Source: Lytechinus pictus (taxonomy: Eukaryota). Taken from it: 64,000 bases of DNA. The stretch spans positions 24,738,001 to 24,802,000 of the forward strand of contig NC_087254.1 of NCBI RefSeq assembly GCF_037042905.1, written 5' to 3'. The notes under the pieces are model-generated. The model saw only the letters and a program-made list of their open reading frames with translations. It was not told where the DNA came from and searched no databases. Both the position numbers and the translations under genes were made by a program. Positions 1,221 through 36,100 of the stretch are shown here, piece after piece (within the stretch, counting starts at the first letter, position 1; each line of letters begins with the position of its first letter).

Positions 1221-4200
1221 ATGTCTGCAACCACCAATTTCTTCAAGACGGCTTCTGCTGAGGAATGGACAAAAGTTCTTAAACTCTACAACCATGTCTT
1301 GAATCTCAAGGCTTCTAAGATCCAGAAACCTGGTGGGAGCAAGAATTTGCTGGACCTTGACAAGTGGTAAAACGGGGTCGAGCGTCGAGGACTGAATCAT
1401 CATCATCATGATTCACTGAGTGACAACACACAAATCAGATATCTGCTGATGATGATTTCCAGTCAGTCATCAGTCATGACAAGGGATATGGCCTGACGAA
1501 CATGACGATTAGTTCTTATTAAGTTAGTTAGTGGTTGGGATATGAAATAGACTTTTGTTTCTATCAATTATCATAGTCAGCTAGGAATACAAAACAATTT
1601 TGATAATGAAGCCACACTGAAAAGTGTCAGCATAAAACAGGCTAATTTAGGGGAAAATATGGCACATTTTTTCGGGGAAGTTCAGGCTACTAGAAAAATG
1701 TGATCTGAATTGATTATTAACTTGTGTTTGGCATGTATGGAAAGAGAAAACTCGGGGGCTTCTTTTGACAGTAAGGACAAGTTTATATGGTCATTTTAAA
1801 TAAGGATTTAGAGATAAATTGCAAACCCTTATTTTTGTGTGTGTTGAGATTGCCATTTCTCCATGCGTTTTCTATGGGAAAATGAAATTTCTGTTTTGCA
1901 CAATTTTGTTCACTTTGTCGCAATTTTTCATTGTGATCTGGTTTTCAAATCTTTATAAAAATCATACCATCAGAAAGAGCATAAAAAATCCTATTGGACT
2001 CGATCTTTATGGACAAGTTTTTGGCATTAATAATAGATTTATAACAGCTCTCGGAAGCTAAAAATTTGGATTTGTGTGTGTCCATTTCTTAACTACACAG
2101 TCTATGGCAGAGAAATGCTGAAAATTTACCTAATTTCATTCTTCTTTTTTGAAGCCAATAATTGGATTTTTTTCAAAAATGTTACATTTCTGTCAGTCTG
2201 AAGGTCATTTCTCTTCAAATTCACAAAGAAAATGTGATATTTTCTTGAAATAAGAAAAATATTTTTTTTCTCCAGACACCCTATTAATAATAGACCTCTA
2301 AAATATAGTTTTGAATTAATGGCTTACCTTTAGAATCCAATGTCATGAATCAATTACAGATCTATGTGATATGATGGTGTGTGTGATGCCTCATTCGAAG
2401 ACTAAATCCTTGCTCTCATAATCGATTATGACATTGGATTGTAAAGTTACTCCATAGTAATCCTCTAACAAATGTGTGAAATTAAACCGTATGAGAACCA
2501 AGAAAGAATTTTGAAAGATGAGCCAAAAAAAAGCCTAAAAAGTATCAGCGTGAGGCAGGCCTGATGCAGGAGTATCATTGTTGCCTATATATAGACCTAT
2601 ATCTGTTTCAAAGACACATTCTTCGGCTATTTTATGAATGTAATCCTTTCATCCCAGGCCTGTCTTGAATGGGGTTCGGTAAATTTACTAGGCATTTGCA
2701 GTCTGCAACCACCATATCGGTTCTCTTTGTTGAGTCTATAGATTATTAGCCATTTGCAATGTAGACAGTGATATTATCACTATTAATAACAGTTATGAGG
2801 CCCTAATGATAAATGCAAAACAATGATTTTTATATAAAACGAACAATAATACAGCTAGGTGATTGTGGTGATAAAGTGCCCTCTAAGATTTTTATTGTGG
2901 TGCAACAGTACAAGCACTTAAGGCTTGCAAAGTGCTTTTGCACAACATTGTAAATAACCAAGATCCATGCATGGCCATTAACAAGCTATTGTTTCATGTG
3001 AAAGGTCAACAATATTCTTGCCAGAATTTATTCAAGGAATAAAGGACCCATACTAATTTATAACCCTTGTGATGATGATGATGATCGATGGAAGTGATAA
3101 TCAGGGGCGGATCCACAATTTCCAAAGGGGGGGACACATTTTTTCCCCAAGGAAAAATTTGACAAGCAAAAAAAAAAGGTTCTCCAAAAAAAAAAAGGAT
3201 TTTTCATCCACGAAAAAATTTGACAAGCAAAAAAAAATCTTCACATTCAAATTTTAATCGTTCCTCTGAAAAGGAGGGAGGGGCACGGGCTGGCTTTGCC
3301 CCCCCCCCCTGGATCCCCCAGTGGGATAATGATAACAGTATTGATTATCAAAGGGGAATCAAACCCAAATAAAAAAAGTTTTCCTTAGAAGAGAAAGAAA
3401 AGCAGTTATATTTCAAAATTCAAATGATATTTTTCTTTAATGATGAGATTTTTAATGTGCTACCTTGGTTACATTTTTTTCACCTTGGTTATTTATTTTT
3501 ATTACTGCCCTGGCACGGGAATAGGTACTTGGATTAAATTACAAATCCCTGATAATTAAGTGCATGGCCTATGGGAAGTTGTCCCTGCCACTTGTTATAA
3601 TTTACTTATTCAGTTAATTTGAAATGTAATAGTCTTAGGGATATTGATTTTAAAACAGTTATAACTTTCTTATTACTTGCTCCATTTCTTACAAACTTTT
3701 ACCAGTACTCTTTTACTTGTTTTTCTCCTCTCTCACATATTTTTATGACGAAGGTTAGATTTCCCTTTAATGATAATGATAATTATAATGAATAAAGATA
3801 TAGCTAACATCAATGATGATGATATTGATGTTGATAATGGTAACATCAAATTTATAATAGGACAATAATTTATGTACAGTGTAGTCATTGTAATCATACA
3901 ATTGTAGGTCTTACAGATTATACTCTGGCATTCTTTTTTAACTGACAAGTGAGTTATTGTCGTTGTTGTTGTTGTATACAGGTTTCAAACAGAACTTTCA
4001 CAGTCAATACAAGGAAGGAAAGAAAGATACATCACACATGAGGAGTTAACAAAGCTTATGAAGTGGAAATTGAGTGTAAGTAAATTCTGTTACATTTACC
4101 AGGGATTGGAGACTTGGTGGCCCGTATTCTGAACTCGGGTTTAAATTAAACCCTGGTTTAAAGTTGTGGTTAAACTATGGAGAGCCAATTGGGGGACAAA

Positions 4201-7200
4201 TCCCTAACGGTACAGTATATATTCCATTTATCAAATCATATGACACCCAAGTTGTTCATAATTGTCTGGGAATGATAACTGAAGTATTTTTCTTCATTAT
4301 GAGAGCAAAAGAAAAAGAAATAGTAAACATGAGAAATATACAATATAAACAGATTTATTAAATTTGGCTTCCCATAATTTTAGCACAGAGTAGACCGTAG
4401 TCTAAGTTAAACCTGACTTCAGAATACGGGCCATTGGTTGGAAGGCACTTCTGCACTTTGGGTTATAGGATAACTCCCCAGCCCAATGCAAACTCTCCCA
4501 GAAGGACACTTTGCTATACTATATACTAGGCTGATGACTATTGGGTCCCAAGTACAACTGTTTTCCTTGTTTTTACATATAATTATTTCTGCTTTCGTGA
4601 TATGAATTCTTCCAAACCACTACACCTGGATTTAGTGCGGCAAATATCAGTTGATGCCTTGTAGTTGTTTATAAACAGGGCCCTAAGTACAGAAAGAGAC
4701 TTGTCCCTGGGACCTCAAGTTATGCTGTATGCTTAAGGATTTACATAAAGGAATTATATTGTTTGTTGCTGTTGTTGTTTGTGGGTTTTTGTTTCTTTTT
4801 TTTTTGCTGCTTTTGTTGCAATAACTAAAGAACCGCTTTGATATTTAAAGTGCATAGAATCATTACATTTGAGGTTATCCTTTATAGTAGCATCAAAACA
4901 TTCTAATCGAACAAAGTATTCAAAGCTCAGGGGCTAGCCGCTAGCTAGAAACACCTATAGCTTGCTCCTCTATTTTGTTTTTTATCAGAATTTTCTGATG
5001 TCACTCATATTCTCAATTTTCTCTCGTTTCACCAGAGAGGAAAGTTCCGACCCAGATTGACTGAAATGGTCCAGACCAACAGCCCAGACCTTGTTGAGAA
5101 GTCTAGCCGACAAGCCTTCAAGAAGTTACCCAACGTGGGTGCTGCCATCAAAGAGTTGATTGTGCTAAAGGCAGTTGGTCCAGCAACAGCATCAGGTGGG
5201 TGTTTCATAAAGCTGTTTGTAAGTTAAAGTGATTGGTTAACTTTGGTTTGACTTTTAAAAAATCTGAGCTAGAAGGTCACACTTGTTACCTGTGTCTGTG
5301 ATATGTTACAAAAATGAAGTCCAGAAAAAATTGCGTTCGAAAATAATTATTTAGTGCTTCAAAAATTGAAATATAAAGTGACCGAAAACATCATCTTAAT
5401 TTCATCCCAAATGTGTACTATTTAGGCGTCTATAAGACGCCTATATATTTACAAAATCGGGGTTTGCCTTGTAGTTTTAGCTTTTCATTCTCAATAATGG
5501 TTGTTTTCAGGGTTTATTAGTTCTAATACATGCACTTGTACACATGTTTCATCTTGGTTTGAGAATTTTTTTAATCGGCTGCTCAGTAGTTAAACAATAC
5601 CTTTAAGAACGCCTGGTGATCCTTTCTTATGGCAAATGGTATATTCATTAGAGATGGTTTTGCGCGTAAGGATCACCAGTCGTTCTTAAAGTCACTCTTA
5701 ACTTACGAACAGCTTTATGAAACGGCCCCCAGGTATATCCCTAGTCCCCTGGATACTGTACGTTACAGTTCAAGGTAGAATCCTTGCTTGATGGGGGGTG
5801 GGTCTGCTCAAGGATCAGTGATGTTTGCACCTTTGCTCATCCTAACATCTCAAAATTAGTCCTTATAAGTAGTTTTATCAAAATCACGTTGCTGTTATTT
5901 TATTTTCAATGCTTTTATCTTCATTTTCAGTGTAGAGGGGTCACTATACAAACGGTATCAAATAATTGGATTTCCATGTTCAGGGTAGAAATGTTTGCCT
6001 GGTTGTGACGCCATTTAAAGTTTCAAAGCGTAGATCTTGTCATTTAGGTTGCATTTTAGATACATGAAGCATCAACCGGGGGTGTACTTGAGTCTATTGT
6101 ATTGCAGTTGATTTAAATGTTGAGCAATATTACTTATTCCTATCCAAATGATTTAGCTGCTATAACAATCATTAACTTATGGAATATTAATTCATTTCAA
6201 TTCTTTTCTTTTCTTTTTTTCTTGTCAGCCGTCTTAGCAGCAGGAGCCCCTGAACATGCCCCATTCATGGCAGATGAAAGTATGTTGCCTATTCCAGGCC
6301 TGTCCCCACTGGCTTACACTGAAGCTGCTTATAAAAGATATGCAGTAGAGGTTCAAGACTGTGTGAAGAGACTCAAAAAGGAAGGTAATGTACAATGGGA
6401 AGGAGATTGTGGAAAGAGAATGAATTTGAACAGTTAAAATCCCATGTGGATAGGGTGGATAGTTGACCAGTGGTATAAATGTTGCAGTGGGCTGAGATTT
6501 TAATAATGTGATGTTGTGTTCTGTAAAAAAAAAATTAAGTGGTTGAAGTGAGTGAGCTGAAAATTCGTATTTTTTTAATTGAATTTTTTGTCTCACCGGC
6601 ATAGCAGAGTGAGACTATAGGCGCCGCTTTTCCGACGGCGGCGTCAACACCAAATCTTAACCGAAGGTTAAGTTTTTGAAATGACAGCATAACTTAGAAA
6701 GTATATGGACCCAGTTCATGAAACTTGGCCATAAGATTAATCAAGTATTACTGAACATCCTGCCTGAGTTTCAGGTCACATGACCAAGGTCAAATGTAAT
6801 AGGGTCAATGAACTTTAATAGACCATGTTGGGGGAATCAACATCAAAATCTTAACCTAAGGCTAAGTTTTTGAAATGTCATCATAACTTAGAAAATATAT
6901 GGACCTAGTTCATGAAACTTGGACATAAGGTTAATCAAGTATTACTGAACATCCTGCTTGAGTTTCAGGTCACATGACCTGATGACCAAGGTCTAAGGTC
7001 ATTTAAGGTCAATGAACTTTGGCCATGTTGGGGGTATTTGTTGAATTACCATCATATCCCTGTAAGTGTTTTGGTCTAGTTCATAAAATGTGGAAATAAG
7101 AGTAACCAAGTATCATTTAACACCTTGTGCGAGTTTCAGGTCACATGACCAAGGTCAAAGGTCAATGGACTTTGGCCATATTGGGGGTATTTGTTGAATT

Positions 7201-8138
7201 ACCATCATGACTCTGTAAGTATATTGGTCTAGTTCATAAAACTTGGACATAAGAGTCATCAAATATCACTGAACATTTCATGCGAGTTTCAGGTCACATG
7301 ACCAAAGTCAAAGGTCATTGAACTTTGGCCATTTTAGAGGTTATTATTAGATTGCTGTCATTACTTTCAAAGTATATAGATATAGTGTATAAAATGTGGA
7401 TATAGGGGTAATCAAGTATCACTGACAAGTTTTAGGTCACATGATCAAGGTCAAATGTCAATGAATGTAGTATTGTATCATTATATGAATGGTGTTTTTT
7501 GTGAATGATTATTTTATATTAGTTTTCAAAGTCAGCACTGCTGTTATTTTGAATCGCGTGATGCAGGTGAGACCGCCAGAGGCGTTCCACTTGTTTTTTC
7601 TACAAATCTTAGTACTTACAATGTACATTACTACCATGTAAAACATTGCTCTTAATCTAAATTTTGCCATTTCCTTATATTTCATCTGGAAATATGTATT
7701 CAAGCTTTTCTGTCTCCGCTCACTGGACATTTCCTATATTGTGCCATCTAATGTCGTGTTCACTGCCTATTCAACCTTGAATTATGTAATGTACCACCAA
7801 ACAGTATGTTATATCTCCTCTTATAATTACTTTTTGTAGACTTCTGATTTGTTTTAATATGTACTTGAAACCACTGCATGTTTTACTTATTGGAGGAACT
7901 ATATCCTGTTGTCTTCAATGAAGGCTCACCAATAATTTCAGATTTTTCATTTTAACATTCTTGCTGTCCAGATCCCTCCGGAGAGTGGACCCCGCATAAA
8001 GTGGAACTGGCCCTATGGACCCATTACATGGCTTGTAAGCTAGACCCCTCTGTACTCGAAACCAAAAATGGACCATCTAACAAGAGGAAGAGCACTGGAG
8101 ATGGAGATGGGGATGAAGAAAAACCTAGAAAGAAATAA
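1221..8138 (+). CDS. Amun/zgc:112496-like uncharacterised protein with helix-hairpin-helix DNA glycosylase fold, 240 aa, 5 exons
   Basis: Exons 1221-1366, 3982-4075, 5036-5195, 6229-6384, 7972-8138. All are GT-AG with consistent phases, 723 nt in total. Translation: MSATTNFFK...LLDLDKWFQTEL...LMKWKLSRGKFRPRL...LIVLKAVGPATASAVL...PFMADE...WTPHKVELALW...KPRKK*. KWKLxRGKFRPRL and LKxVGPATASAVL are recalled hallmarks of this family. Confidence 0.85.
3102..3323. mobile_element. Short MITE with CAGGGGCGGATCCA...TGGATCCCCCAGTG ends
   Basis: Imperfect terminal inverted repeats with G/C runs; internal repeat of AAAAATTTGACAAGCAAAAAA. Confidence 0.6.
3351..3770. mobile_element. Kolobok-like (TTAA/AGG-ended) MITE, degenerate
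   Basis: AAGGGGAATCAAACC at left; GGTTAGATTTCCCTTTAA at right. Confidence 0.5.
4119..4432. mobile_element. MITE with GGCCCGTATTCTGAA TIR; related degenerate copy at ~38507-38815
   Basis: GGCCCGTATTCTGAA...TTCAGAATACGGGCC. The second copy shares TGTGGTT(T)AACTATGGA and CTAAGTTAAAC...ACTTCAGAATACGG. Confidence 0.75.
5196..5729 (+). mobile_element. CAG-duplicating MITE (PIF/Harbinger-like) at the exon 3 splice donor, interrupted by a TTAA-flanked insertion
   Basis: GTGGGTGTTTCATAAAGCTGT...ACAGCTTTATGAAACGGCCCC with CAG on both sides (5193-5195, 5730-5732). Confidence 0.85.
5228..5602. mobile_element. Kolobok-like MITE nested in the CAG MITE
   Basis: TTAA|AGTGATTGGTTAACT...AGTTAAACAATACCT|TTAA imperfect TIR; the host MITE resumes after it. 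Confidence 0.65.
6585..7597 (+). mobile_element. Helentron-associated (HINE/pearl-like) element with internal ~155-195 bp tandem repeats
   Basis: Begins in a T-run with GTCTCACC(G)GCAT and a nearby inverted GTGAGAC, then a GGC microsatellite, about 5 repeats containing AAGGTCAAAGGTCA, 3' subterminal IR ATGCAGGTGAGAC, and ends in a T-run. Same family as 31573-32531. Confidence 0.8.
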
Positions 8139-15193: not shown

Positions 15194-18100
15194 ATGGCAC
15201 AGGAACATGAAGATAATGTAACCAGTCTTGAGAATGCCTCCTTTGCACGACTTGCAGCCGAAAAGGAGCAGGAATGGCGCCATCTTCAGGCCATGCATGC
15301 CCAAAGTCTTGAAGATTGTTTAAGAGAAAAGGACAAGACCTTGAAAGAGCACAAAGAGAAGTTTCAAATGCTCAAAGAAGATTTCAAATTCAATCTGAAA
15401 CTCCTTGCAGAGAGGGATCAGGAATTAGATCAGTAAGAACTTAAATATCTTTCTTTCTTTCTGTATGAAATTTTAAATCATAATCTCCATGTAATTTAAT
15501 TTATTTTTCTTTTTTCATATGCTACAGGGCATAATATTTGTGATATCGCATTGCAATAAACTAGGCAACATGTCTTTTATGGAGCAGATTTTTAAATGTG
15601 TCTAGACTCTGAACAAACATTAAAACGGTTTATAAGTTTGAGAAATGAAATCATGACTTGATGCTTTGACCTTTATGCATTGCCTAATTGCATTCCATTG
15701 TACTCAGTAGATGACTAAAACAAAAAGAAACATGTGCTTTGAATCCTGAGAAATATCAAACAGTGCTGTAGTTGATAAAGATGGTGCATTTGTAGCTTGA
15801 TGTTTCCAAATCCATTTTGTGTCAGATACCGGTGTTAATAGTATATTTTGGGAGAATGGGACTATTGGTAACTACTGGTAATATTTTTTTCTTTAACGTT
15901 TGTTGAAAAGTAAAAATCATTAGCATGGAAATTAATGGGTCAGCATTTGCTACAATCTATAGCCTCGAATCCTTCATTCTAAAGAGTAGCTAGAGATACA
16001 CATGACTTCAATCAGAACATATTCAGATTTAAGTTTATTTAGATTGCTGTGATACTAGCAATTGTTGTTTGATATGATCCTAATTTTGAAGGCTTGAAGT
16101 AATGCAAGAGCAGCTAAGAGCCAGGCTGCAATCCAGAGAGGCCGCAGTCAGTGAGTTGAAGATTCAAATCGATGAGCTAAAGACAAGAAGGAGTCAGGAC
16201 GAAAGGGCAATGGAGGATCTTCAAAGACACTATCAACAGAGGATTAGGGAAAAACAGGCTGAGGTGGAACAATACAAGATGTTAGTATCAAAGGGAAATA
16301 AACTCTTAATTCAATCTACAGTATTAAGTAAATGATGATTTTTCAATTACAGATATCTTGAAAATGTCTGCACATATTTTATTTTTTCTCTTCCACATAT
16401 TGAACAATATCAAGTTAAAACATGAATCAAAGTTTAGTATTTTCTAAAAGATCTATCAATGTCAGCCTATGCCTTTAATTGAATGCCTTCATGTTTCCAA
16501 ATGCAACCTACAACATGGAACAAGCTATCAAGTGATATGATGTTATTTATGCTCAGTTGTAAAGACGCTGAACTGCAGACAGAGCGGGATGAGGTGGAGG
16601 CACTGAGGCGTGATATGAAGCGGAGGATCAGTGAGGTCGAAGAAGAGCTTGATATTCAGCGCAGGGAGATGTCAGCTGGCTTTGATGATGCTTCCAGGAA
16701 GAGAGAGAAGGAATATCGGACCAAGATCGATGAGCTCAGCTCAACAGTGCTATCACATGAAATGAAGGTAAGAGGGTAATATTATCGCATGGCTGATGAA
16801 GGCTATCAAAGGTTAAGTCCACGTGAATAAGTTCATGTTAGCCTTTTGAAGGGAGGATGATCTTAATAGATGGTAAGGGTCACAATATCAAGGGTTTATG
16901 TTCCCAGGTCATATTCATGAAAATATTTCTTTCGTATTAATTATTATAACAGAAGAAACTTTCAAGGATCAATTTCAAACTTGAGGTATGCGTATGTGAG
17001 TGAGAATGATCTGATTACATTTTGGAGACAGAAGGTCAAAGGACAGAAAGGTCATTATTTCAAAATGTTATAATTTGAGTGCATAATACATTCATGATCA
17101 GGCAATGACAGTGGCAATAATGTTGACTGTGCAGTCAAGAATCAATCTATTTTGAAAATTGTAAAAGTTAGGTATGTAATACATGTGTATTCTCTGCCAA
17201 TCGCAAGGGCAAATAATTTTGAAAGGTGCTTTCAAGAATATATCTAGTTTTTCAGTTGCACAATGTTTTTTGTTTTGTCTTCAGGCCAAACTATTGAGCA
17301 AGGAATTGGAGCTGGTGAGAGGGGCGAGTCAACAGACCTCTACAGAACTCAAGAACAGTGATACCAAGATGGATGACCTGAAAAAGAAACTCAAACAGAC
17401 AGAATGGGAGCTGAGTGACCTCAGAGGTATCAAGGATGCGAGGTAAATTATTTTTTAAACAATTTTGAAGAGCATCAAAGTGTAGAGACATTTATTTATA
17501 AATTATGGCTTGCACCCAGTAATTTAGATTGCCTGTGCGGCCTGATAATCTTGGAACCTGTCATTCACTCCCTACCGAGCAGAGCCTCTACCATCAGGTC
17601 CTTTACAGCTCCACTTTAGAGTCACAAAGAAAATACATCGGCAACTCTGATTTTATTTGATACATAAGGAATGCATATAAAGTTTGATTGATTTGGGTTT
17701 TTTAATATGAAATAGAAATTGCAGCTGAATATGAAAGGACCGTATTAGAAGTAACTTTACTCTAAAATGGTTCCTACCAACTACCACCCAGTGGTTGTTT
17801 CATAAAGCTGTTTGTAAAGTTACACACAACTTTACGCAGGACTGGAACAGGATCTTAGGTGCTAAGTCAGCTACATGAGGATATATTGTGTGGCACAGAA
17901 AGGGTCACCAGTCGTGCCTAAATTCTTGCGTAATTTTACAAACAGCTTTATGAAACTGCCCCCAGGAATCATTCTTTAAATGTATCAAGCACTAAAAACA
18001 GGTATCAGAAGTAAATGTGGGGGATATGCCTTTGAATGACTAAAGAGTTGCAGTTTCATACAATGTGGTGTACACTATTCAAAAACTATTTATAATTGGT

Positions 18101-21100
18101 TGTAATATGACAAAACGTTACTTATGATTGCTATGTTGCTTTTTTCAACTTGTCACAAACACTGCCTAGCTTCTTTTGCCAGGCCCAATTTTACAAATTA
18201 TGTTATCAGTTATTAGTTGAGGTTAGCATTATTTCTATTTAATGTTTCTTTCATTGTACTTTGATTGAAGATGTGCAGTTTTGATGTAATGTTTACTGAA
18301 TTGTGAAAAATAAAAATGAATTGAATTGATAATGCTTCCCAGTCAATTCAAGTCAAGGATTTTACTTCAATTAACAATAAATGTATCATTCCCTTTTTGA
18401 GTTTTTTTTTTTCTTGGTGGGTGTGTTTGTTTGGAATTTTCTCATCATGTGGTGAAAAAACTTCATATATACTCCTCACAAACTCTAAACTCTACTGAAA
18501 AATCAGTTTAAAATCTATTTACAGAATTACTGAGCTTGAGTCACAATTGCTTTATGCAAAGCAAGCAGTTGAGAGGGCCGAGGAGGAATTCAACAGAAAG
18601 TAAGTCAACAATTCATCATCATCATCATCATAATGATAACATGATAATGATAATAATAATAACAATGATAATAATGATNNNNNNNNNNNNNNNNNNNNNN
18701 NNNNNNNNNNNNNNNNNNNNNNNNNNNNNNNNNNNNNNNNNNNNNNNNNNNNNNNNNNNNNNNNNNNNNNNNNNNNNNNNNNNNNNNNNNNNNNNNNNNN
18801 NNNNNNNNNNNNNNNNNNNNNNNNNNNNNNNNNNNNNNNNNNNNNNNNNNNNNNNNNNNNNNNNNNNNNNNNNNNNNNNNNNNNNNNNNNTATTGATAAT
18901 ATAAATGATATTTCTTTAGTATTTATTCCATTAAACATACAAGATTCAAATTCAAGATTCATATGATGGGTCCATGAATGCAGGCATACAAAGAAATTTA
19001 GAAAATACAATAGAAAAGGACACTTTCTGCCTGATACCCCTTCAAATTCAGAATTATTAGTAAAATGTCTGTGCCCTGTTGATCCCCACCCCACCCCCCC
19101 CCCCATTCTTTACTTTGTATTTAATGTGGATTCAGGTTTCTTCTTCAGACTTGATTTTAAATGTTTTGTGGAATTCAGATTTTTAATATCTGATGGGGAG
19201 ATTGTTCCAATATCTACTTGTGTTTGGCCCGAAGCTTTTCAAATAAGCTTTCATTTTACAATGTACTGGTACTTAACAATTTGCATTATCTCTCACTTAA
19301 TTTATCAACTCATATTCTTTCCATTTCCTAGTTTTTTTTCCCGAAGTATACGTGTATGATTTCAATGTCAATAGCAACATTAAACTCTGGTGAACTTTCC
19401 CACCTAATATAAACCACTAAAATATCTTTATGCAAAATATTACTGCTGTGGTAACCAAACTTCGTATTTCAAAAAATTTTAAAAAGAGAGTGAAAAATCA
19501 TAGCTGAATTAACGCTGTGTCCAGTTAGTTTTCCCTGGGATGTAGTGTAGGGGTGTATTCATTTTTAGATAGAGAATTAGGAGATGGAGAGAATATCGTT
19601 TGATCGTTCTGGTCATTTTCTCATTGAAACATAAAAGTGACTTTTATTGATATGTTATTTTATCCCCTCCATGTCAGACATAAGGAGCTGGACAGATATG
19701 CCAGGGAGAAGGAGACTGCCATGCTTGGGTTGAAGGAGGCCCAGATGGAGACAGAGAGAAAGCTCCAAGAGGAGATCAGGAGGCTAGAAGGAGCCCTAGA
19801 GGACAAAGAGGTGGAGATGAGGAGAGAGACATGGGAGCATCAGGATGCACTGAAAGATAAAGAGATGCTTATTGAAAAGTGAGTTAGAAATAATGTTTGA
19901 GGTGGCTAAATGTGCTCAACCTAACCTGTATTTGATCACCTAAATACTTTCATTCCAACATCTAGGGATGTTGTCAAGACCGGTACTTCTGAGTCAGCGA
20001 GGCCATTGGAGATTTGCTTTTCCCCCAAGGGCAAGGCCAAGGCCGACAAAATGAGACCTCGAGGTTGGCCTAGCCTACGTCCTCGCCAAGAGCTTTCTGC
20101 TCACATTCATGATATCATCATATTCAACCATGGTAACACATTAACCAGCAAAGTTAGCAATTTTGACAGAAAAAAAATATATCTTGCATATCAATTTAAC
20201 ATGCATTTTACAAGTACTGGCTATCATGGCAGGATTCCTTTGTTTATACATGTATAAAAGCTTTGTTTAATTCAAGCATTTCGGTATTCATCAATTTGAC
20301 CGTTTCTCCCATGAATATGAAGTGAGGTGATTTTTTTTTTATATGGAAGTGCCCAATTGTAGATGATATTAATTGATATTGTCATCAGCATTGTTTGAGG
20401 TATTTAAGGTCAAGTAAGTAGGTTAAATGTTGAATAGCAACAAAATACATACACAATTAATAAATTCACATATTGAATGTGCACAAGGGGAAAGGATTCA
20501 TTATTACAGATAACTTTTTTTGTAATTTTGCAGACATCAACAAGAGTCCAGAGAGCTAAGAAACCAGCTTGATGGCCAGGTATCCAAAGTATCTAAGGAC
20601 TTGGTATCAAAAGACCTTGTGATTGAGTCACTGCGAGACCGGGAGGGAAAACTCAGAGCTGAATTAGAATGCCGCAAACAAGACATTGAAAGGTACCTTT
20701 TATGCAGTATATTTGCATACAAACAAAAACATTCAAGCAAGAATATTCAGAAATCCTGCTCAGTACTATTATTTCCATAGCTCTATTTGGTTGATAGAAG
20801 GTTTGGAAATGTAGTATCATGTGTATGTTTTGATGTGAAGATCTAGATAGAGAAATGTAAGCCTTAATGTGGTTGATATTCGTAGTCTTTGGTGAAACTT
20901 TTTTTATGCTCACCTCTATTTTAGTGGTCCACCAGTCTTCACCAAAGAAATCACGTATGGTTACTGGTAAAAAAAAAACCTGTAATAGCTCCGCCCTAAC
21001 TGCATACGTGAAGGCATTTGAAAAGTAGTTCTTTGCAGAGAAAAAGTTTTTGGATGATACTCTTCCTAAATTATATAATTCTGATAATTTGATAGCTTGC

Positions 21101-24100: not shown

Positions 24101-27100
24101 AACAATATCAGGTAGGTAGGCATTACCGTCTCTCCTGGTAGTTAGAAACTGAAAAACTTTGATAGTGGGATTGAAATTATGACTGTCTTAATTTTTCTGT
24201 TTTCATTTTCTACTTTTCTGCTCCTCTTCCCGATCAACAACTTTTTATTTTCTTTCTTCAATCTCTTCTTCTCACCCTTTTCTATGTTTCATTAGTTCTT
24301 GCCAAGAAAATAAATAGCTTAGAAAAGAATAGGTAATAATGGGTCAGGCAAAATGGGGACTCATATATTATTTGTTATGCTGAAGTAATTATGCTTCATT
24401 TTCACAGCCGAGAGAGAAACAGGCAGAGGTTGATCAGTTAAGGTATGAGCTATCCACCCAGGCCAGGCGCCATGCTGCCGAGTCTGCTTCCACTGCTCAG
24501 AGGATGAGTCAACTAGAACTAGAGTTACTAGAGGCTAGGAGAGAAGCAGATGAGTATTACAAGGGTACCTTACAGACCAACCTGGAAGCAACCACCCTTG
24601 GGCAACAGGTGAGGTTACTTTTAGTATGGTGTTGAAAACACAAAAAGCAATCATTTTTTCGGCAGCATGCGAGTTAGAGTGGATGTCCTAAAGTTTGGTG
24701 TTCAATGTTGATGTTGGTGTTAAGCATTAGTCACAACACCAAAACCAACATGAAAGCAACCACCCATGGGCAGTTTACATTAGGTTTTTTTTACTTCGGG
24801 TTACTTCAAATATGGTGTTTAAAACTAGTGTTGGTGCCTGATGGGTGTTTCATAAAATTGTTCATAAGTTAAGAGCAACTTTAAAAACGACTGATGAACC
24901 TTTCTTACGCGTTAGATAATCACCAATGAACATATAATGGTGAACATCATTTACCACAAGAAAAGATCACCAGTCGTTCTTAACCCTTTGCGTGCGGGCC
25001 CGCGAAACCGGATACCTCTCCCTGCGGCGGAGCTGTTTTTGTACATTGCTGGTATTTGGATCTGTGGCGGTCTTTTCCTAATCTATTGCTAAATGCACCA
25101 AACTGAAGTATTTTCAGGATTTTTAGTAAATGTAAAGATGAAAGATCAGACATTTTTCTTTCTAAAACTAAAGGTCTCGCTTCTCAAATCAACAGAATAG
25201 TTAAGAAATTTACGAGGAAAAAGTACTGTTATTTTGCCAAATCTTTGCTTTTTCCCAAGTCAATAGGCACTGTGTACAAAAATGCGTAAGGGCAATCAGC
25301 ACGCGCGGACAAGTCGGGTTCGATCGATACCGCTTTGTTGTCTGCTCTGGTGCTTTTTTTCATTGCCTATTGTCACCACTGAACTAGAAATATATAAAAA
25401 TGAAAGAGGAAAAAGTTCAAACTTAAAGCAAACAAAAGCAATCCATTCATCTAACAGAAATGATAATGATATTTGGTGTTTTTTAGATATATCTTTAAAA
25501 TTTTGAAAAACTAAGTGGTTTAGAAATGAATAAAATTTCAAAGTGAAACATTGTCAACTTACAAATTAGAGGAAACAGCGCCGGCATCCTACACAACAAG
25601 ACTAAAAACGAAAGCTAAAACAACTACATGTAGATCCAGTTATGAAAACTAAAAAAACTTGTTCCTCCTATTAAATCAGTAATCTGAGAATCTATTATGA
25701 TCATAAAAATTTCCCGCCGATTTTGTGATTATTTTGGTGGAAAACTGTTTATCATGTGTGATTGTTTGCACCATTGAGAATCTGCTCCGATCCTACATGC
25801 ATAGAGCCTGCATGCCACTGCACCCAGGCAGGAAGCCAGCTCGTTTGCAATGTATTTGGTTAGGAAAAAAATCACCCGCAGAACTTTCAAAAGTTTAGTT
25901 ATATCGATTAATTGTTGTCTCTGCTTCGTCATCTGTTTGGTTATTTGATGAAAATTCGTCACTTTTAAATGTATCAACTACATTTTGTTCAATATTCTAC
26001 AAATACGGGACAGATAGATGTGTCCCGGGAAGGGTTTGCCGGGACGCCGGGACAAAGGAGCAAAATACGGGACGATCCCGGGAAATACGGGACGTCTGGT
26101 CACCCTGGAAATATATGACAAGAGGTAGTGGTCTTTTTGTGCAATTTTTGACATGTGGAATATTTCATACTGACCAGGATATGCATATAACTGGTATGTG
26201 AAAATAAGCGAAATTTAGTGCCACAACTTTTTTAATGGAATTACCATTGCTATGCTTTTCTGATTTGTGCTCTAATTAGTAAACTTGTTAGAGTTGACTT
26301 GGTTTTGTTTATCCATCACCCATTCCTTTATGTAAAGGTGTATTGATGTATAAGCACATGTCGTGCAACATCCATGCTCTTCCAAATTAAATTTCATAAG
26401 AATTCAAATTCTATTGTGCCCATTTTTATATACACTGTACTTAGTAGATATTTCATGACTGAGCACACGAAGGTCCAACTTTGAAGGCTCATTAAAAGTA
26501 ACAACCTTCTTGTCCTCAAACTTCTATTCAATTTTTCACCCTGAATGTGTGATTGGACAGTATGAGAGAGAGGGAAGGGAATATTTACTCAAAATTTATA
26601 TAGAGAAAGTTGAAATGAGAAAGGCAAAATGGTAAAGAGAGAGAGGGGCATGAAAGTAGAAATGGAAGAAATAGAAGGGGATGGAGAAAAGGGAGGATAA
26701 GAGAGATTGACAGAAGAGGAAAATCAGAGAAAATGAGGTGAGATGAATAGTTGAATGAGAAGGGAGGTTTTAAAAAAAAAAGCTAGAGAAAAGGGACATG
26801 ATTTCTAATCGTTAAAAGAATTTTTTTTTATAATGCAACCAGCTAGTAGGCCTTTATTGTTCAGACAATTTGTAGGCCTATACTCAGAAAGCATATTTGT
26901 TGTGGGCCTTTCTTTGTCACAGTGTGCGCGTGAAAAAGGTCGAGTTTTTTATGATTTCATGTCTGTATGTTTACTCCCCTTTAATACAAAAATGTGACTA
27001 AATCAACATTTTCAGTTATGAAAGTATTCAATAACATATAGATCATGATGTAACAAAGCAAACTAAAACTTTAAACAGCACAAGGAAGTTTCTTTGCGTT

Positions 27101-30100
27101 CCTTTCTCCCATCTGCCTACACGCAGCATTTGTCGACCAGCCAGTATTGACCTAGCAAAATGGCGGCGCGGCTTTGTGTACGTTGGGAATAGGGACAAGT
27201 ATTCCACGTATTCTAGTTCAGTGATTGTCACGCTCCTCATGAATGGTCTCTTTACCCCCTTGTATACAGATCATTTGCAAAGTGTATAATTACGACGATA
27301 ATCCGTTTGGGGTGAAATCACAGCATACCAAATACCTTTATTTTCCAGAATGAATAAAAAAGGGTGAATGTTCCCTTGCAAGTACAATGATGATGCTGCG
27401 CAACGAAAGTCCGAAACTATTTTGTGATTTTTGGCTTCTGGGCTTTAAGACGGTGGCCTCAATGTTTCACTAAAAATCGCCTTTGGTTTCTCTTTTAATG
27501 AATTATAGTTTGTTAAAAAACGATTATCTTGTTCCTGAAGATTGCATACCAGTCTTCGATTTGTTTTCCTGTTGCAATTTCAAAGAGCGAAGGGGGTAAA
27601 TGTGACTCAAATAGTGGATCTGAAATCATACCTCCCAACGCTCTCCTCGTCTTGTTCTACGTTTCATTTTTCTATCTCCCTTTTCCCTCCAAAATAACCA
27701 TGCTACCGATTACTGTTCATCACAATGAGAGAAAGTAAATTATTTTTATCTATTGAAATTGTAGCATCTAAATTAAATATATTTATACATCTTTTTCAAA
27801 TATTTGGGTGTTGATTCTCACCAGGGTTAGCGCCCCCCCCCCCAAAAAAAAAGGTCAACCTGTCTTTTTTTTTTCTTTATATGGATCCTTTTCTGCTACG
27901 CTATTCGCCAGAAAAACAAAAGAAAAAAAAGGAGAAAGAAACTGGCGAAAAAAATTAATAACATTTTTAGGGGGAGGGTTAGGTGTAAGATTGAGAGGGG
28001 TTTGTCGGGACACGTCAAACAAACATGTTTTTTTTTTTTAGGTGGATGCCTCAACGTAAATTCTTATTCTATTTCCTCAATTTCCGGCGAGGAAACTTTT
28101 AGTTCATTGTTAGTTTTAGCGTTTGAACTGATTATGCTTTTTTCGAATTTTCAATGCAAAAAATTTCACCTGCTTGGGAGAGAAAGAGAGAATGAGATGA
28201 AAAGCTTCCAAACCTAACATGACAAATTCATTCTATAAAATGGCGTGAGTTACAAATTGAGGTGAGGGACTAGTATTCTATGATTCTTTATAAGTAAATA
28301 TTCATGCAATCGCAAAAGCGCACATTATGGTTTACATTATACCTTTTTGGTCCATTTCCTCTTTTTTCCCTTCCATCCTTTCTGTCGTTTTATCATTCTC
28401 CTATACATGAATCTCGATTTGCATTTTCTATTCTTTTTTTTAAATCTCACTTGCATCTTCTTCCATCCCTCTATGTATCATCACCCAGGGGAAATTGTAT
28501 TTTTTGTGAAGAAAGCACTGTCATGCTCAAGAAGAAAATGTTCTTGCCATGTATTAAGCGCCTGCCATGTTTTGTCAATAAATGAGTAAACATTTATTTT
28601 TTTGAATGTTACTGTCCTAATATGAAAAGCAGTAAGAGTTTTTTGTATTGCTAAATACGAGAAGCATTCAGTAGGTCATCCTGACGAAATATACTAATCT
28701 TCCTTTTATTCAGGGCGTTGGCTATTTGTCCCCTGCTCTTTTTATAAGGAATTTGTTTGAGCGTCCGCCATGACTTTCTTTTTGTTTGGGGAGTGCCGAG
28801 ACCAAGAACTGCATGGACGTTTTCATTTTCAAAAGAGCAGAGGATAAACGGTGTTCTAAATTCCTTTATTTTCTGTTTGTTTCCTTTGAAATAGAAGACA
28901 AAAATAAGAGCAATATCGGATGAGAGAACGAGAGAAAGCGGAGGGGGGGGTTCAAAAATTAACCAGGGGCCCGTTTTATATAAAATTTGTTTACAAATTT
29001 TCAATAACACTTGAAAGCTACTGAAATCCTTCTATTTGACTGGCGGATGGTAAATTTGTTTAAATTATTGCGCATTTGTCAATATAAAATGTACATGTAT
29101 AATGTATTTATAAAACGGTGCCAATTAGGGATTTCCTCGTTTTCCCTTTCTCTGGTTTCTAACCTGTAACCGAATGTATTATCTACAGCTTTCATTCCCT
29201 TATATCTATCGTCTTTCTATATCCCCTCCCTTCTACACCTTTCTTTCTCTGAGTTCTTCTCATTTAAATTATATCTGTATCGTCTTCCTTCTTCCCGATT
29301 TGGATTACGAGGTATATACCCGCCCCCATCCCCCTCAATCCTTTCTGATTTTTTCTTCTCAGTTCCTGTCATTTTACATTACATCTAACGTCTCCCCGCT
29401 CTCTTTCTCTCTTCATCGGAAACGGTTCCGAGAGAATGCCTCCTTTTTGCCAACTTGTATCGGAGATGGTTGGAATTGTGGGCCTCTTGTTCTATTGCAT
29501 CGTAGTCATCATGTCGAAAATTTTGGGGGGTTTTCCCCCACTTTCTCAAATAATGTCTCGAAAAACCTTTTAAAATTACTATTGTAACTGTCATTTCACA
29601 ATGAATTCTATATCATCTTCCATTTTCTATATTGATAACATGGGTAGATATCTTTCGCAAAAGACAATATGATGATGATCATCATCATCATCGTATAAAA
29701 ATGCACAACTTAACTATTTGTGAACTTGGGGCTTAGGGTTATGGCAAGACAGGCCTCAATCTTTCACTAAAAGTAATTTTCTTTTTTAGATTTTTTCATA
29801 AATTATATGTCTCATTTAATTTGATTTTCCATGCAGCTACTAGTATTATAATGATAAAATAATTTTGTTCCTGAAGTTTGCGCACCGGTATTCGATTTGT
29901 AATATCCTGAAATTATTTCTAAGTGTTAAACGAATGAAAGTGACTAAAATTGTAAGTCTGAAATCATACCTCCCAACTCTCTTCTTGTCACTTTCTACGT
30001 TTCTTTCTTTATCTTACTATTCCCTCAAAAAGAGCCATGATAGCAATTAATGAAAGTAAGAGAAAGTAATTTTTCTTGAATAAATTATAGCATCCGTAAT

Positions 30101-33100
30101 CATGTTCTTTCGTTTTGTTCTATTATCTCCTTCGTTTTGTTATATTGTCTCCTTGATTTCACAGCCGAAAACAAAGTAATAAATAAATCATTAAAAAACA
30201 TTCACAACAGTTAGAATTCATTTTTGTCTCTATCGTTTTAATCGTTCAATCTCATAGTACAGAGGCAGCGCAGTTGGTAGGAAGTTTCCGTCCTCACCCC
30301 TTTCAGCAAACATGTACAAAAAAATCTGAAGTCTATATAAATTTATGATTTTTTTGGGCCGGTCCACTCCCTCCCACATTCAGCTCAACCCCTCCATTAT
30401 CAAAAACGCTCAGTGGCCCCTGTTTTTTATTTTAAAAAATCAGATATTTTGGTTTTGATGCTAGCCAGGGTAAGCGCCCTAAATGTTTGTTTGCAGTAAC
30501 GGAAACAATTTGTTTTCCTCTATGAATCTTTTCTACCACGCTATTTGCCGGTTTAAAAAAAGAAGAAAGAAATTGGCGAAAAAGTAGGAAAATCAATAAA
30601 ATTTGGGTCGGTATCAAAATTTTTTTTGGGGGGGTGTAGGTCACACATGAATAAAAGTTTGTAGGATTGAGAGGGTTCTATCGGATGACAAACCAGACAA
30701 ACAAATTATCATCCTGTATCATTTTATTTCCTCCATTTCGCGCGAGGAAACTTTTAGTTCATTATTGGTTTTATAATTTGAAGTGATTATGTTTCCGGCA
30801 ACTTTTCAATGCAAAAGTTTTCATCTGGGAGAGAAAAGGAAATAAGATGAAGAGCTTCTTAAACCTAACCTATTATAAATTCATTCTGTAAAATGACATA
30901 AATTAACAAATTGTGATTTTTTTTTTTGCCACTTCACCCCCGTCCCACAGCTCAACCCCTGCACCATAAAAAACATTGCTGTCCCTGTATAACATCTTTT
31001 TCCACATATTTTGGTTTAGATGCTAACCATGGTAAGCGCCCCAAATGCAATTTTTTTTTGGGGTCGTAACGGGGAAAAAAAGTGGCCAGGACGGTCTTTA
31101 TTCTTATCTTTTCTACCGCGTTACTCGCAATTAAAAACAGAAAATCGGAGAGAGGAGACAAACAAGCAATTTTAGAGTGTAGGTCAGAACATTTCCATCT
31201 GGGGAGGGGGCAAGGTCAAACAAGAATAATGATAAAAAGTCATCAGTATGGCAAGGGTCTGGGGACCGAGTTGCGACAAACAAACGTTGTGGGATTTTTT
31301 AAAAGTAATCTAACCAAAAAATAAAGTCATGTTGTTATTCGTTTAAGTAGATATTCATGGAATTTTAGCAAAAGCACACTTGTCTAATCCCCTTTTATCT
31401 CTGTCTCTCATTCTCTCTCGTTCTCTGTGACATCTGAACATATTTTTTCTATAATTTCCCTAAATGATTCTTCGTTCATCCTTATATGCATCATCACCCA
31501 GGGGTAGCGCTTTTATGCAATATGAATCACTGACGGATGTCATAAGCACCTGCGTTGTCGGTAAATGAGACAATTTTTGTCTCACCTGCATAGCAGAGTG
31601 AGACTATAGGCGCCGCTTTTCCGACGGCGACGGCGGCGGCGGCGTCAACACCAAATCTTAACCTGAGGTTAAGTTTTTGAAATGACAGCATAACTTAGAA
31701 AGTATATGGACCTAGTTCATGAAACTTGGCCATAAGGTTAATCAAGTATTACTGAACATCCTGCCTGAGTTTCATGTCACATGACCAAGGTCAAAGGTCA
31801 TTTAGGGTCAATGAACTTAGACCATGTTGGGGGAATCAACATCAAAATCTTAACCTAAGGTTAAGTTTTTGAAATGTCATCATAACTTAGAAAATATATG
31901 GACCTAGTTCATGAAACTTATACATAAGGTTAATCAAGTATCACTGAACATCCTGCATGAGTTTCACGTCACATGACCAAGGTCAAAGGTCATTTAGGGT
32001 CAATGAACTTTGGCCGAATTGGGGGTATCTGTTGAATTACCATCATAACTTTGAAAGTTTATGGATCTGATTCATGAAACTTGGACATAATAGTAATCAA
32101 GTATTACTGAACATCCTGTGCAAGTTTCAGGTCACATGATCAAGGTCAAAGGTCATTTAGGGTCAATGAACTTTGGCCAAATTGGGGTATTTGTTGAATT
32201 ACAGCCATAAATTTGAACGTGTGTTGGTCTAGTTCATAAAACTTGGACATAATAGTAATCAAGTATCACTGAACATCCTGTGCGAGTTTCAGGTCACATG
32301 ATCAAGGTCAAAGGTCATGTAAGGTCAAAGAACTTTGGCCACGTTGGGGGTATTTGTTGAATTGCCATCATATCTCTATAAGTGTATTGGTCTAGTTCAT
32401 AAAACGTGGAAATAAGAGTAACCAAGTATCACTGAACATCTTGTGCGAGTTATAGTAGTTTTCAAAATCAGCACTGCTGCTATATTGAATCGCGTGATGC
32501 AGGTGAGACGGCCAGAGGCATTCCACTTGTTTCTTTTTAGATACGGTTTGTTGGTCGAAAAAAAAGTATTCATAAAAGCTTTTTGTATTGCTAAGTACGA
32601 AAAGCATTCAATGGGTCATCCTGCCGATAAACACTAATCTTCCTTTTGTTCGGGGCGTTGACCATCTGTATCCTGCTCTTTTCGGAAGGAATTTATTTGA
32701 GTGGCCGCCCAGACATTCTTTTGTTCGGATAGTGCCAATATCATGAACTACATGGACGTTTCCCTTTTGAAAAGAGCAGAAGATGAATGGTGTGCTTAAC
32801 TGCTTTCTTTTCTCTTTTTTTCAGAATAGTAGACAAAAATAATAAGAAGGAGGATAATGGGGAGGGAAAAAGTTCAAAAGTGCACCAAGATCAGCTCAAA
32901 GTACTAAGACATAACAAGCTTTTTGTTTTTCTGAAAATACAATCGATCAATGAAACCAAGGAGATATCATTCTATCTAAAGTGATATCTCCTTGATGAAA
33001 CAAATAAGACGAAAATGGTGAATAAACGCGTAGCTTATTACGTGACGATCTTGCAGAAAAGATAGCGTATATCTATCAGAACAACGATATGGATCAAATC

Positions 33101-36100
33101 ACGTGATCAGAACAAATCACGTGATCAGGCCTTGTGCGCGCATACGTGCTCGTCACAAAATTTATTCTCCCCGTCAGACTCCAACGAGAAAATCGGATAA
33201 AGTTGAAATGATTTCCTAATTTCGGGATTTTTCCCCACGTAGCTGTATATTTTTTTCAATCTGTTATCGAAATAGGTTTATAAAGGAAATAGTGGCAGAG
33301 GTTTAAGTACATAAAAATTACGAAAGAGCTGAAAAACTTCATTGAATTAAACCAAACATATCTCGGCTTCTGTAGAAGCCCGTCGTAGCTAAGTGAACGA
33401 CTCGCTGGGCTTCTGTGGAAGCCCGTCGCACGCAAAGGGTTAAAGTCGCTCTTAACTTACGAACAGCCCCCAGGACACCTGCCAAAATACCCAAACCAAA
33501 TTGGAAGTAACCTTTAATAGGACAGCAGGTGGGTGTTTCATAAAGCTGTTCGTAAGTTAAGAACGACTGGTGATCCTTTCTTGTGGTACATGGTAGATTC
33601 ATTGGCGATGGTTTAGAGCGTAAAAAGGATCACCAGTCGTACTTAAAGTCGCTCTTAACTTACGAACAGCTTTATGAAACGGACCCCAGGTGGGTGTTTC
33701 ATAAAGCTGTTCGTAAGTTAAGAGCGACTTTAAGAACGACTGGTGATCCTTTCTTATTGCGAATGGTATATTCATTAGCGATGGTTTTGCGCGTAAGAAA
33801 CGATCACCAGTCGTACTTAAAGTCGCTCTTAACTTACAAACAGCTTTATGAAACGGACCCCAGGTAAGTTAACATGGGATGATTTCAAGTATAGTATTAA
33901 ACATTAGTGTTTCACACGAGTGTTGGTGTAGAAGCAAGACTCCTGTTCAAAGACACTGAAGCTTTTATAGAATGGTATTAGACTTTATTTTCTGCCCCCT
34001 AAATCCACATACTGTATATTTTTACACTGAAAGTAGATTATGAGTTATAAAATCATGGTCATGAGAAAAAGAATGATAGTGATTATCCAAATTACTATTA
34101 CTGGAAATGCTTGATATTTCATATCACTTTCTGTTATACATGCCTTCAAGAAGCTCCAAACAAGTTGACTGTTAATTTTTTTTCAAGCTACCTTGCTTTT
34201 AGTGCAATGTGTTTACTATTATTATTTTTTTTTGCTTCCCAGGTCTCTGCTCTGACTATGGATCTTGCTGGTCGAGGTTCAACTAACAGGCATGGGATCC
34301 AGGTTAGTTATATTTACTTCACAACAAGATTTTGTTTGAATTTGTTACCAGTTCATTGTTTTATAAAATGAAAATGAAAATATATTGCATAGCTTGTACT
34401 GGTCAGAAAACAATACTCAAAAGATATCTGTAGCATAATCTTGAAGAAAAATGATTATTAATTGACAAATACTTGCAGAAAAAAAGAAAAAATCATATTG
34501 TTCAATAATTAGAAATATATCACTTGTTTCTTAATAACTAGGCCTGAATGACACAAAAAAATTATATATTTAATCACCCCCATCCTTTGATTACCTGAAG
34601 CAAACCTGTTACCAATCATTTAATTCTATGTTCTGTTGCAATCATTTTTATCAGAGTCCATTGGTAACCCAGCTTCAGAGAGAAGTTCATAATCTTAGGT
34701 CTCAGCTGGCTAGGGTCAGAACTCATCCGGGAGATGATCAAAATGCAGACCGTGATGGCGTAAGTATATTTAGTTGGCTAACCATTTCCATCATGATTGG
34801 TAAATTTATGGGCCCCTTTATGTCATGGCCGATGGAGATAACCTGGAGCATGGTACAAGAATATGGTGAAACCTTTCTTGACAGGATGTCAGTGTTCATG
34901 TTCAGAGGATGGAGATTTTTCTCTGTAAAAGACTACCAGACTGGATACAGGAGGGGGGGGGGGTCTGTACATACACGGTACACATAAAGCTCAATTAATG
35001 TGTGTGGGGGGTATGATGAACAGGGGTAAATCGAATGTTCGGTTTTTTTTACCAATGTCATTTTCTACAGCTAACTAAGAATTTACTAGACTTTTTAAAA
35101 TCAAATTTGCTTATTTGACCATATTTAATCCCAAGCCATGTTTGATTATTTCTTGTAAAAGTTTCAACAACAACAGGCCATTATTCATCATTTCACAGAT
35201 AATCTATCAAAATTATGGGGTATTTTCATAATCAAAAGTATGTAGCTATATGTACCGACTGGGGTCTTTTGTTTTGCCACCAGTTGCAAGCTAAACTCAA
35301 GACAGCAGCACGTCATATTAGTCAACTAGCCAAGGAAAAACAGAAACTTATTGAGATGGGTAATCGATTACGATCAGAGCTGGCCCTCTACAGACCTTCA
35401 CCTCCTCCCCAACTGTCAAAGGGTCAGAGGTCAGCTGCAGGAGAGAGGAGTGTGACAGCAGGGAAGCTGGCAGAGCAGGTCTCTTTTAAGCTTCAAAACT
35501 TGGAGAAACTGCAGTATGCTCTCACCAAGCAGGTAAAGTCATGGCCAAATTTTCTGATAATGATAACAATATCATATATTACAGATAAGTTTAATTCCAC
35601 ATTGTTAGCTAAATGATAAATTGACATAACATTGATAAAAAAGATATTTGTTGCCATCTTTATTGGCTTTTAGACAATACAATTTAATTAATGTAATTGC
35701 CCTGTTGATCTGAACTACATGTATTTGGTTAAATCTAGATGGATTTAGATTATGAATCTCTTTAAACAAGAAAATGAGACAAATATTGGTTATCCTATCT
35801 CATAGGATGCCGTAGCTATGGGCATTTTAGGGATCAGACTGAAACAAAGGAACAAGGGCAAGTTTTTCTGTTTGGACACTGGACATCTTGTTAATGACAA
35901 TGAAACACTTGCACCACTTCTGTTACGCTCCCGAGTTCTTGCATGGTCATTGACCAACAGTGAATTTTGTTCCAGGGTGAACTCAGGATGAACCATAATT
36001 CCAGTTCTGTACTTGTCTTACTCATTAAGGTGTCAGCATAAGTAACTGCTTTCAAATCAGGCAAGCTCTTTTTGAGGCAGGTGTAACAATTGGACAAATA

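Follow-up and report, generated by a model that had tools for sequence, protein, structure and literature searches.

A putative PIF/Harbinger-type miniature transposon inserted exactly at a splice donor in Lytechinus pictus, its own terminus the likely replacement donor

What becomes of a gene when a DNA transposon lands exactly on one of its splice donors? The question is raised by a 64,000-nucleotide stretch of the genome of the sea urchin Lytechinus pictus (NC_087254.1, positions 24,738,001 to 24,802,000 of the forward strand; hereafter the window). One of its genes, gene 1, carries a MITE (a miniature transposable element with inverted repeats), here called copy A, immediately after the last base of exon 3. 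We consider it likely that a PIF/Harbinger-type MITE entered the CAG|G of the exon 3 donor, that its own terminus rebuilt a donor there, and that the C|CWG|G target of the family explains the placement. On present evidence no intron was gained at this locus; the element entered one that was already old. The locus adds a new case to known phenomena, MITEs of the PIF/Harbinger type and splice sites that come from transposable elements, and what underlies it is the coincidence of the transposase target with the splice-junction consensus. Coordinates are those of the window, and gene 1, copy A and the further copies B1, B2, C and D all lie on the + strand.

The boundaries of the insertion are precise. 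Copy A (5196-5729, 534 bp) is a non-autonomous element with terminal inverted repeats (TIRs) and contains only short open reading frames (ORFs); a search of a protein collection with the MITE-encoded ORFs gave no match. Exon 3 of gene 1 (5036-5195) ends ...GCATCAG and is followed by GTGGGTGTTTCATAAAGCTG..., with GTGGGT, the terminus of the element, at 5196-5201. At the far end copy A closes with ...CAGCTTTATGAAACGGCCCC (GGCCCC, to 5729), after which come CAG (5730-5732) and GTATATCC from 5733. The two CAGs constitute the target site duplication (TSD), the left one (5193-5195) being the last three bases of the exon. GTATAT (5733-5738) is the displaced original donor, now 537 nt into the intron; contigs of a sister taxon, organism B, run CAG|GT without the element. 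Reads and contigs that stem from other copies in the genome lose their alignment at 5193 and at 5729-5734. An earlier sequence-only reading of this DNA had placed a MITE exactly at the exon 3 donor, with a CAG TSD and the old donor GTATAT beyond it, and both the sequence and the empty sites described below agree with that placement. The structure it proposed stands, and the extent of the element is revised: copy A is 5196-5729 and does not run through 5733, the right CAG is 5730-5732, and exon 4 is 6229-6384.

Within copy A, the left TIR (5196-5232) was defined by alignment and folding, and the right TIR (5693-5729) has a reverse complement that begins GGGGCCGTTTCAT, a PIF/Harbinger-like terminus. 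The TIR arms at 5195-5227 and 5698-5730, of 33 nt each, are 88% complementary, and the TIRs can pair into a stem of ~38 bp that includes the new donor (fold z -7.3 versus shuffles). The left TIR is followed by an internal stretch (5233-5570) that has no counterpart in the short copies of the family, as judged from alignment, read depth and joints of the 5227>5601 type. This stretch is repetitive in its own right in Lytechinus reads, and may mark a long subfamily or a nested repeat. Then come a degenerate second left-TIR-like stretch recognised by alignment (~5570-5600) and a core common to the short copies, which has a 39-nt inverted repeat of its own (5601-5692; 88-91% identical to B1 and B2). 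A scan of 5100-5800 against Rfam gave no match near any threshold.

Several splicing-related motifs can be read in and around the element. The GT start, the TSD ending in AG and the CTTAAC some 30 nt before that AG, all pointed out previously, are present: the A of this branch-point-like motif (5697-5702) lies 31 nt 5' of G5732. The earlier description of the polypyrimidine tract as weak is also borne out, with 52% pyrimidine between CTTAAC and the TSD and an additional AG at 5711-5712, which together make a weak acceptor context. A consensus donor, GTAAGT (5219-5224), is found inside the left TIR as a possible competitor; its use would add 23 nt and shift the frame. Read-through from exon 3 into copy A would meet a stop at 5225-5227.

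Did the intron arrive with the element? A DNA contig of organism B (X30, 1,025 nt) aligns with 5031-5197, has 13 unaligned letters and resumes at 5737-6412, and a second DNA contig of the same organism (X28) aligns through 5197 and ends 25 letters beyond. In a Logan contig of a related urchin (L007), which covers exons 2, 3 and 4, exon 3 ends ...GCTTCAG|GTAAGTTAAC (CAG|GTAAGT), and intron 3 is 569 nt long without the element. In a Tara scaffold (L008) exon 3 ends at the same place, here with CGG|GTAAAC, and the intron again has no element. Organism B, L007 and L008 all lack the element and yet have an intron at this very codon position, so the intron position is old and none was created by copy A. 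The segment 5733-6228 is the pre-existing part of intron 3, matched by the second block of X30 and by the intron at the same position in L007. Comparison with the orthologous empty site, which the sequence-only reading had called for, thus gives a clear result: the relatives run exon-CAG|GT-intron, so 534 bp and one CAG were added. The insertion was absent from every other sample examined (organism B contigs, L007). Copy A is a lineage-specific insertion, of the L. pictus lineage or of an allele within it, into an intron that was already present. Gene 1 is not contained in the L. variegatus stretch that was fetched (L011), and the empty site of copy A there rests on read contigs.

The messenger RNA retains the old exon boundary. 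An mRNA contig of organism A (447 nt) aligns with 3981-4075, 5037-5195 and 6230-6323, which gives the junctions 4075^5036 and 5195^6229; the latter is the junction that had been predicted, here seen on a haplotype other than that of the window. Contig pieces at 6230-6323 and 6294-6384 support exon 4 (6229-6384). The raw RNA reads examined (X21) are from organism B, the taxon without the insertion. Exon 3, which ends ...CATCAG in phase 1, joined to exon 4 yields the open frame ...KAVGPATAS|AVLAAGAPEH..., and homologues in molluscs, fish and cnidarians (~190-230 aa, annotated as uncharacterised, with a weak helix-hairpin-helix (HhH) signal) are contiguous over the exon 3/4 junction, for example P0156 (...GPATASAILAAGAPEH...). 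Searches of Pfam, PDB and Atlas with gene 1 returned only this weak HhH signal, together with a lead pointing to 'zgc:112496-like' proteins. A gene call of 240 residues exists at this locus in the same assembly (GCA_037042905.1). Gene 1 has also received a different MITE (4118-4432; termini GGCCCGTATTCTGAA... and ...TTCAGAATACGGGCC), which occupies much of intron 2; it is very high-copy in the read runs and is absent from L007, whose intron 2 measures ~230 nt.

Which donor, then, would give this mRNA on the window allele? By its geometry, GTGGGT at 5196-5201 is the only donor that yields the 5195^6229 junction. Use of the old donor would add 537 nt with stops; given this, and given that exon 3 ends at 5195 in the mRNA, the terminus of copy A would have to be the donor on this allele. 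A crude calculation of the duplex with U1 points in the same direction, with -14.6 kcal/mol for the new donor CAG|GUGGGU, -8.5 kcal/mol for the displaced donor CAG|GUAUAU and -5.4 kcal/mol for UUU|GUAAGU at 5219 in the left TIR. The GTGGGT of copy A is accordingly placed to act as donor in the window allele, where it is probably used, and used efficiently. The sequence-only reading had proposed that the MITE supplies a new donor; the GT terminus at the exon end and the 5195^6229 mRNA bear out that proposal, and use of the terminus on this particular allele we infer from them. Had the element gone in the other way round, GGGGCC would stand after the exon, and selection would probably have removed such an allele.

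Why should the element lie at this very position? The other members of the family are informative here. A 26-nt TIR motif occurs 9 times in the window versus 0 expected, and BLAST and alignment revealed four further copies besides A, which represent three independent insertions. These short copies measure ~150-170 bp, and copy A has ~340 extra bases after the left TIR. Copy B1 (33529-33686), a short form, and copy B2 (33690-33860) stand in tandem with one CAG in common, and B2 is followed by CAG|GTAAGT. Copy C (17792-17962), older and diverged, is flanked by CAG deep in an intron of CCDC57 and is common to L. variegatus. Copy D is split at a TTAA by an 8.46-kb element into a left part (24841-24984) and a right part (33440-33470) that is followed by a CAG duplication (33471-33473); both parts were defined against the empty site in L. 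variegatus, which reads GGTGC-CAG-GACACC, letter for letter. B1/B2 are likewise flanked by CAG. The pre-insertion sites are CAG|G in four out of four cases (T-CAG-GT for A, G-CAG-GT for B, and C-CAG-GA for both C and D), and two of them are C-CAG-G.

The reads extend this pattern to the rest of the family. In the consensus of loose ends, drawn from hundreds to thousands of reads, a C precedes and a G follows the CWG (...AC|CAG, ...AAC|CTG, CTG|GT, CTG|GA). Many copies end ...ACCCAC|CTGG, that is, they have the GTGGGTG terminus at both ends and a CTG duplication. Depth over the whole length of the MITE is very high in DNA and RNA runs alike, and MITE sequence is abundant in RNA contigs. A scan of contigs from metagenomes, viruses and prokaryote genomes for the TIR motif gave just single chance matches, in bacterial contigs. 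In this family the duplicated bases are a 3-bp CWG within a C|CWG|G core. Since CAG|G is both half of this target and the splice-junction consensus, the position of copy A at a donor is accounted for, and because each insertion rebuilds CAG|G at both ends, the tandem of B1 and B2 is explained as well. The window has 177 and 163 CAGG sites on its two strands, and ~9 real junctions of this kind (6 CAG|GT donors and 3 CAG|G acceptors); the chance of one junction hit among four insertions is about one in ten. Junction hits would be common genome-wide for a high-copy family, and a special affinity for splice sites is not needed. Enrichment at CAG|GT junctions with the GT end facing the exon had been envisaged. 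Copy A itself lies in this way, the C|CWG|G target suffices to explain its position, and the other copies lie off known junctions.

The same features point to the superfamily. The right terminus is GGGGCCGTTTCAT in copy A and GGGTCCGTTTCAT in copy B, both of the GGGGCCGTTT type and conforming to GGSNCYGTTTG; the left terminus is the variant GTGGGTGTTTCAT. As in PIF/Harbinger elements, there is a 3-bp duplication at a fixed target, CAG or, in the read consensus, CTG, with C before and G after. The TIRs recur in B1, B2, C and D, the TSD is matched by an empty site, and five small copies without a transposase ORF lie within 64 kb, as is characteristic of MITEs. Published termini of PIF/Harbinger elements are GGGCCCGTTTG and GGTCCTGTTTG, and that of ZmPIFa is GGGCCCGTTTGTTT (PMC6327408); the GGGGCCGTTT... 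terminus of the sea urchin family resembles both ZmPIFa GGGCCCGTTTGTTT and Harbinger GGTCCTGTTTG. The closest parallel in target is Harbinger3_DR, reconstructed from zebrafish, which integrates into AAACACCWGGTCTTT, so that CWG within a CCWGG core is duplicated there too (PMC3016246). Analogous to Tourist-like MITEs of this superfamily, the family is short, non-coding and high-copy and tends to sit in genes. It differs in that one terminus is the variant GTGGGTGTTT and in the ~340 extra internal bases of copy A. Taken together, the termini and target suggest that the family belongs to the PIF/Harbinger superfamily. In the L. variegatus locus, a single-exon ORF of 308 aa with a DDE_Tnp_4 domain (Harbinger/HARBI1-type; L009:1973-2899) lies upstream of CCDC57. 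No TIRs flank it and nothing there matches the MITE terminus; the L. pictus window yielded no counterpart. The ORF may be a decayed or domesticated copy.

The events at gene 1 can be pictured as follows. After the split from the sampled sister taxon, or as a polymorphism that L. pictus still carries, the element would have transposed into the CAG|G of the exon 3 donor. The CAG|G splice consensus half-matches the palindromic C|CWG|G core, which would make donors ordinary targets. With the GTGGGT terminus facing the exon, a donor GT with good U1 complementarity would be rebuilt at the old position. Exon 3 would still end at 5195 and be joined to 6229, and the element and GTATAT would leave together within a longer intron, intron 3 now measuring 1,033 nt instead of ~496 nt.

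Some observations weigh against this account. The mRNA contig, being of another haplotype, differs from the window at 4 of 159 exon 3 positions, and both the choice of donor on the window allele (5196 versus the GTAAGT at 5219) and its efficiency are read from the sequence. Within the TIR stem the new donor can be base-paired to the 3' end of copy A, which could lower its use. No transposase partner with matching TIRs was found in the window or the L. variegatus locus, a search that did not extend over the genome, and the usual duplication of described PIF/Harbinger members is TWA, here CWG. The four independent insertions all share the orientation of the gene that hosts them, which is weakly compatible with orientation selection (one-sided p ~0.06); near 44030, however, there is an older related copy in antisense to a neighbouring RF-1 gene, and the orientation of copies is not informative. 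The donor and the stem bear on the possibility that the insertion is mildly harmful, the window carrying a young hypomorphic allele in which part of the transcripts end up frameshifted or intron-retaining, either because the GTAAGT at 5219 is used or because the TIR hairpin hides the donor. The GTAAGT, 23 nt inside the element, is a perfect donor sequence, a stop follows on read-through, the stem is stable against shuffles, and the insertion is missing from all other samples. However, at the terminal donor the CAG exon context is preserved and the calculated pairing with U1 is stronger than at either alternative, U1 is able to bind before the right TIR is transcribed, and the same assembly has the 240-residue gene call at this locus; we hold a hypomorphic allele to be unlikely. 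That the repeat was simply misplaced here in assembly is barely credible. The element is present in many copies, and the exact insertion junction did not occur in the independent DNA runs examined, but the boundaries are exact, the 3-bp duplication is perfect, the flanks are collinear with those of the relatives, and copy D shows the same structure against its own empty site.

Could the family be one that makes introns? Introners are intron-generating DNA transposons of algae, dinoflagellates, fungi and a few animals (PMC9860276, PMC12130899). A type that brings along its 5' splice site and recruits the 3' AG of the duplicated bases has been described, and removal from GT to CAG that restores the pre-insertion RNA, to which the sequence-only reading had drawn attention, is indeed the described logic and fits the geometry of copy A (PMC9860276). 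Introners and copy A also have in common TIRs with a short duplication, a GT start and a duplication ending in AG. In a true introner family the asymmetric termini (5' GTGGGT; 3' ...CCCCC plus the AG of the duplication) would have been selected for exact removal from exons, whole-intron copies would exist elsewhere, and copy A would merely have hit an existing donor. In A, B1 and B2 the sense-side terminus is the one with GT, a variant of the canonical GG; the target is similar to the proto-splice site MAG|G, and the sense orientation of all four window insertions would fit as well. Yet copy A lies inside an older intron, and no presence or absence of an intron tracks the element. The search for copies that form complete lineage-specific introns gave none among the five in the window, C, D and B1/B2 being deep in CCDC57 introns, and the idea of a family that masks itself by splicing is not upheld. 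The acceptor signals of copy A are poor, the many copies with symmetric ...ACCCAC|CTGG right ends have a CTG duplication and hence no AG, and the abundance of MITE sequence in RNA contigs means that it is not efficiently removed as a unit; the related copy that is older is antisense. A survey of 2022 limited introners to just two animal groups (PMC9860276), and the introner surveys consulted report very few animal groups and do not mention echinoderms or molluscs. A true introner family is on these grounds quite unlikely. It is equally doubtful that this sea urchin Harbinger-type family is a working introner that founds lineage-specific Lytechinus introns from coding CAG|G sites; were it so, introners would extend to echinoderms, beyond the very few groups of animals that are known to have them, and the gain of introns at proto-splice sites would be tied to the target preference of a transposase. 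A removal in two steps, from 5196 to the AG at 5732, which would rebuild CAG|GTATAT as a zero-length exon, and then from 5733 to 6229, is very unlikely. AG and GT are adjacent at 5731-5734, CTTAAC lies 31 nt upstream, and pairing of the TIRs would draw both ends of copy A close to each other; the intron is however just 1,033 nt long, the tract is weak, an AG lies nearer to the branch motif than 5732, and the regenerated GTATAT pairs poorly with U1. The intermediate would be indistinguishable from the pre-mRNA of an empty allele. Recursive splice sites belong to very long introns and come with strong pyrimidine tracts. The ratchet points of long Drosophila and vertebrate introns also have AG|GT adjacent within the intron, but the site in copy A differs in its short intron, weak tract and weak regenerated donor and is a by-product of the TSD; recursive splicing at 5732|5733 is thus unlikely.

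The likely reading, a MITE whose terminus replaced the donor that it hit, has a precedent in maize. Wessler and colleagues reportedly found in the late 1980s that Ds and dSpm insertions are spliced from transcripts by means of splice sites in their termini. There, too, the terminus of a DNA transposon is said to supply the donor and a genic insertion to be tolerated. The maize insertions are reportedly exonic and imprecisely spliced, whereas copy A would restore the junction exactly, its insertion point being the old donor.

The locus offers a clean natural case in which a DNA transposon hits a donor and would leave the mRNA unchanged, with empty and filled sites in sister taxa. As the Harbinger-type target (CCWGG, with CWG duplicated) overlaps CAG|G, such families would be expected to land on splice junctions repeatedly. 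A terminus starting with GT may then be sufficient for tolerance and, in principle, for making introns, which provides a concrete genome-wide hypothesis for the origin of introners in an animal.

Some further features concern the copies of the family and their surroundings. The older related copy noted above (44030-44100; L009:32663-32730 in L. variegatus) is degenerate, is related to subfamily C and lies antisense to an RF-1-domain gene; L. variegatus retains the CAG and the terminus, and L. pictus is without the terminal ~20 nt. Copy B2 (171 nt) is open in one frame throughout and, with the 3-bp duplication, would add 58 in-frame codons if exonised (33583-33867). Candidate exon features near the copies were rejected on comparison with CCDC57 proteins. 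An exon at 33474-33528 (55 nt, open frame) would have placed two more copies at splice sites, but in the proteins of S. purpuratus and L. pictus the exon that ends at 24608 is followed at once by the one that starts at 34243; the apparent second donor CAG|GTAAGT after B2 (33861-33869) borders no exon of the known proteins; and a 36-nt microexon candidate after copy C was ruled out likewise.

The second gene of the window, CCDC57 (15.2-38.1 kb, +), has its best tblastn matches, measured over the matching pieces, in S. purpuratus (81%) and L. pictus (94%). The L. pictus locus in GCA_037042905.1 agrees with window positions 5194-48071 at 100% identity outside a run of N (18679-18890). Both L. pictus and L. 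variegatus have CCDC57 proteins that include the exon 18523-18600, which S. purpuratus isoform X2 lacks; this exon lies shortly before the run of N. The 8.46-kb element that splits copy D (24985-33439; termini CCCTTTGCG... and ...CGCAAAGGG) is inserted at TTAA in the style of piggyBac, and together with copies D, B1 and B2 it expands a CCDC57 intron of L. pictus to 9,634 nt, the length in L. variegatus being ~470 nt. An ~870-bp repeat composed of ~160-bp internal units is found in two copies that are ~84% identical (6585-7460 and 31574-32451), and L. variegatus has more copies, one of them inserted near the orthologue of position 17700.

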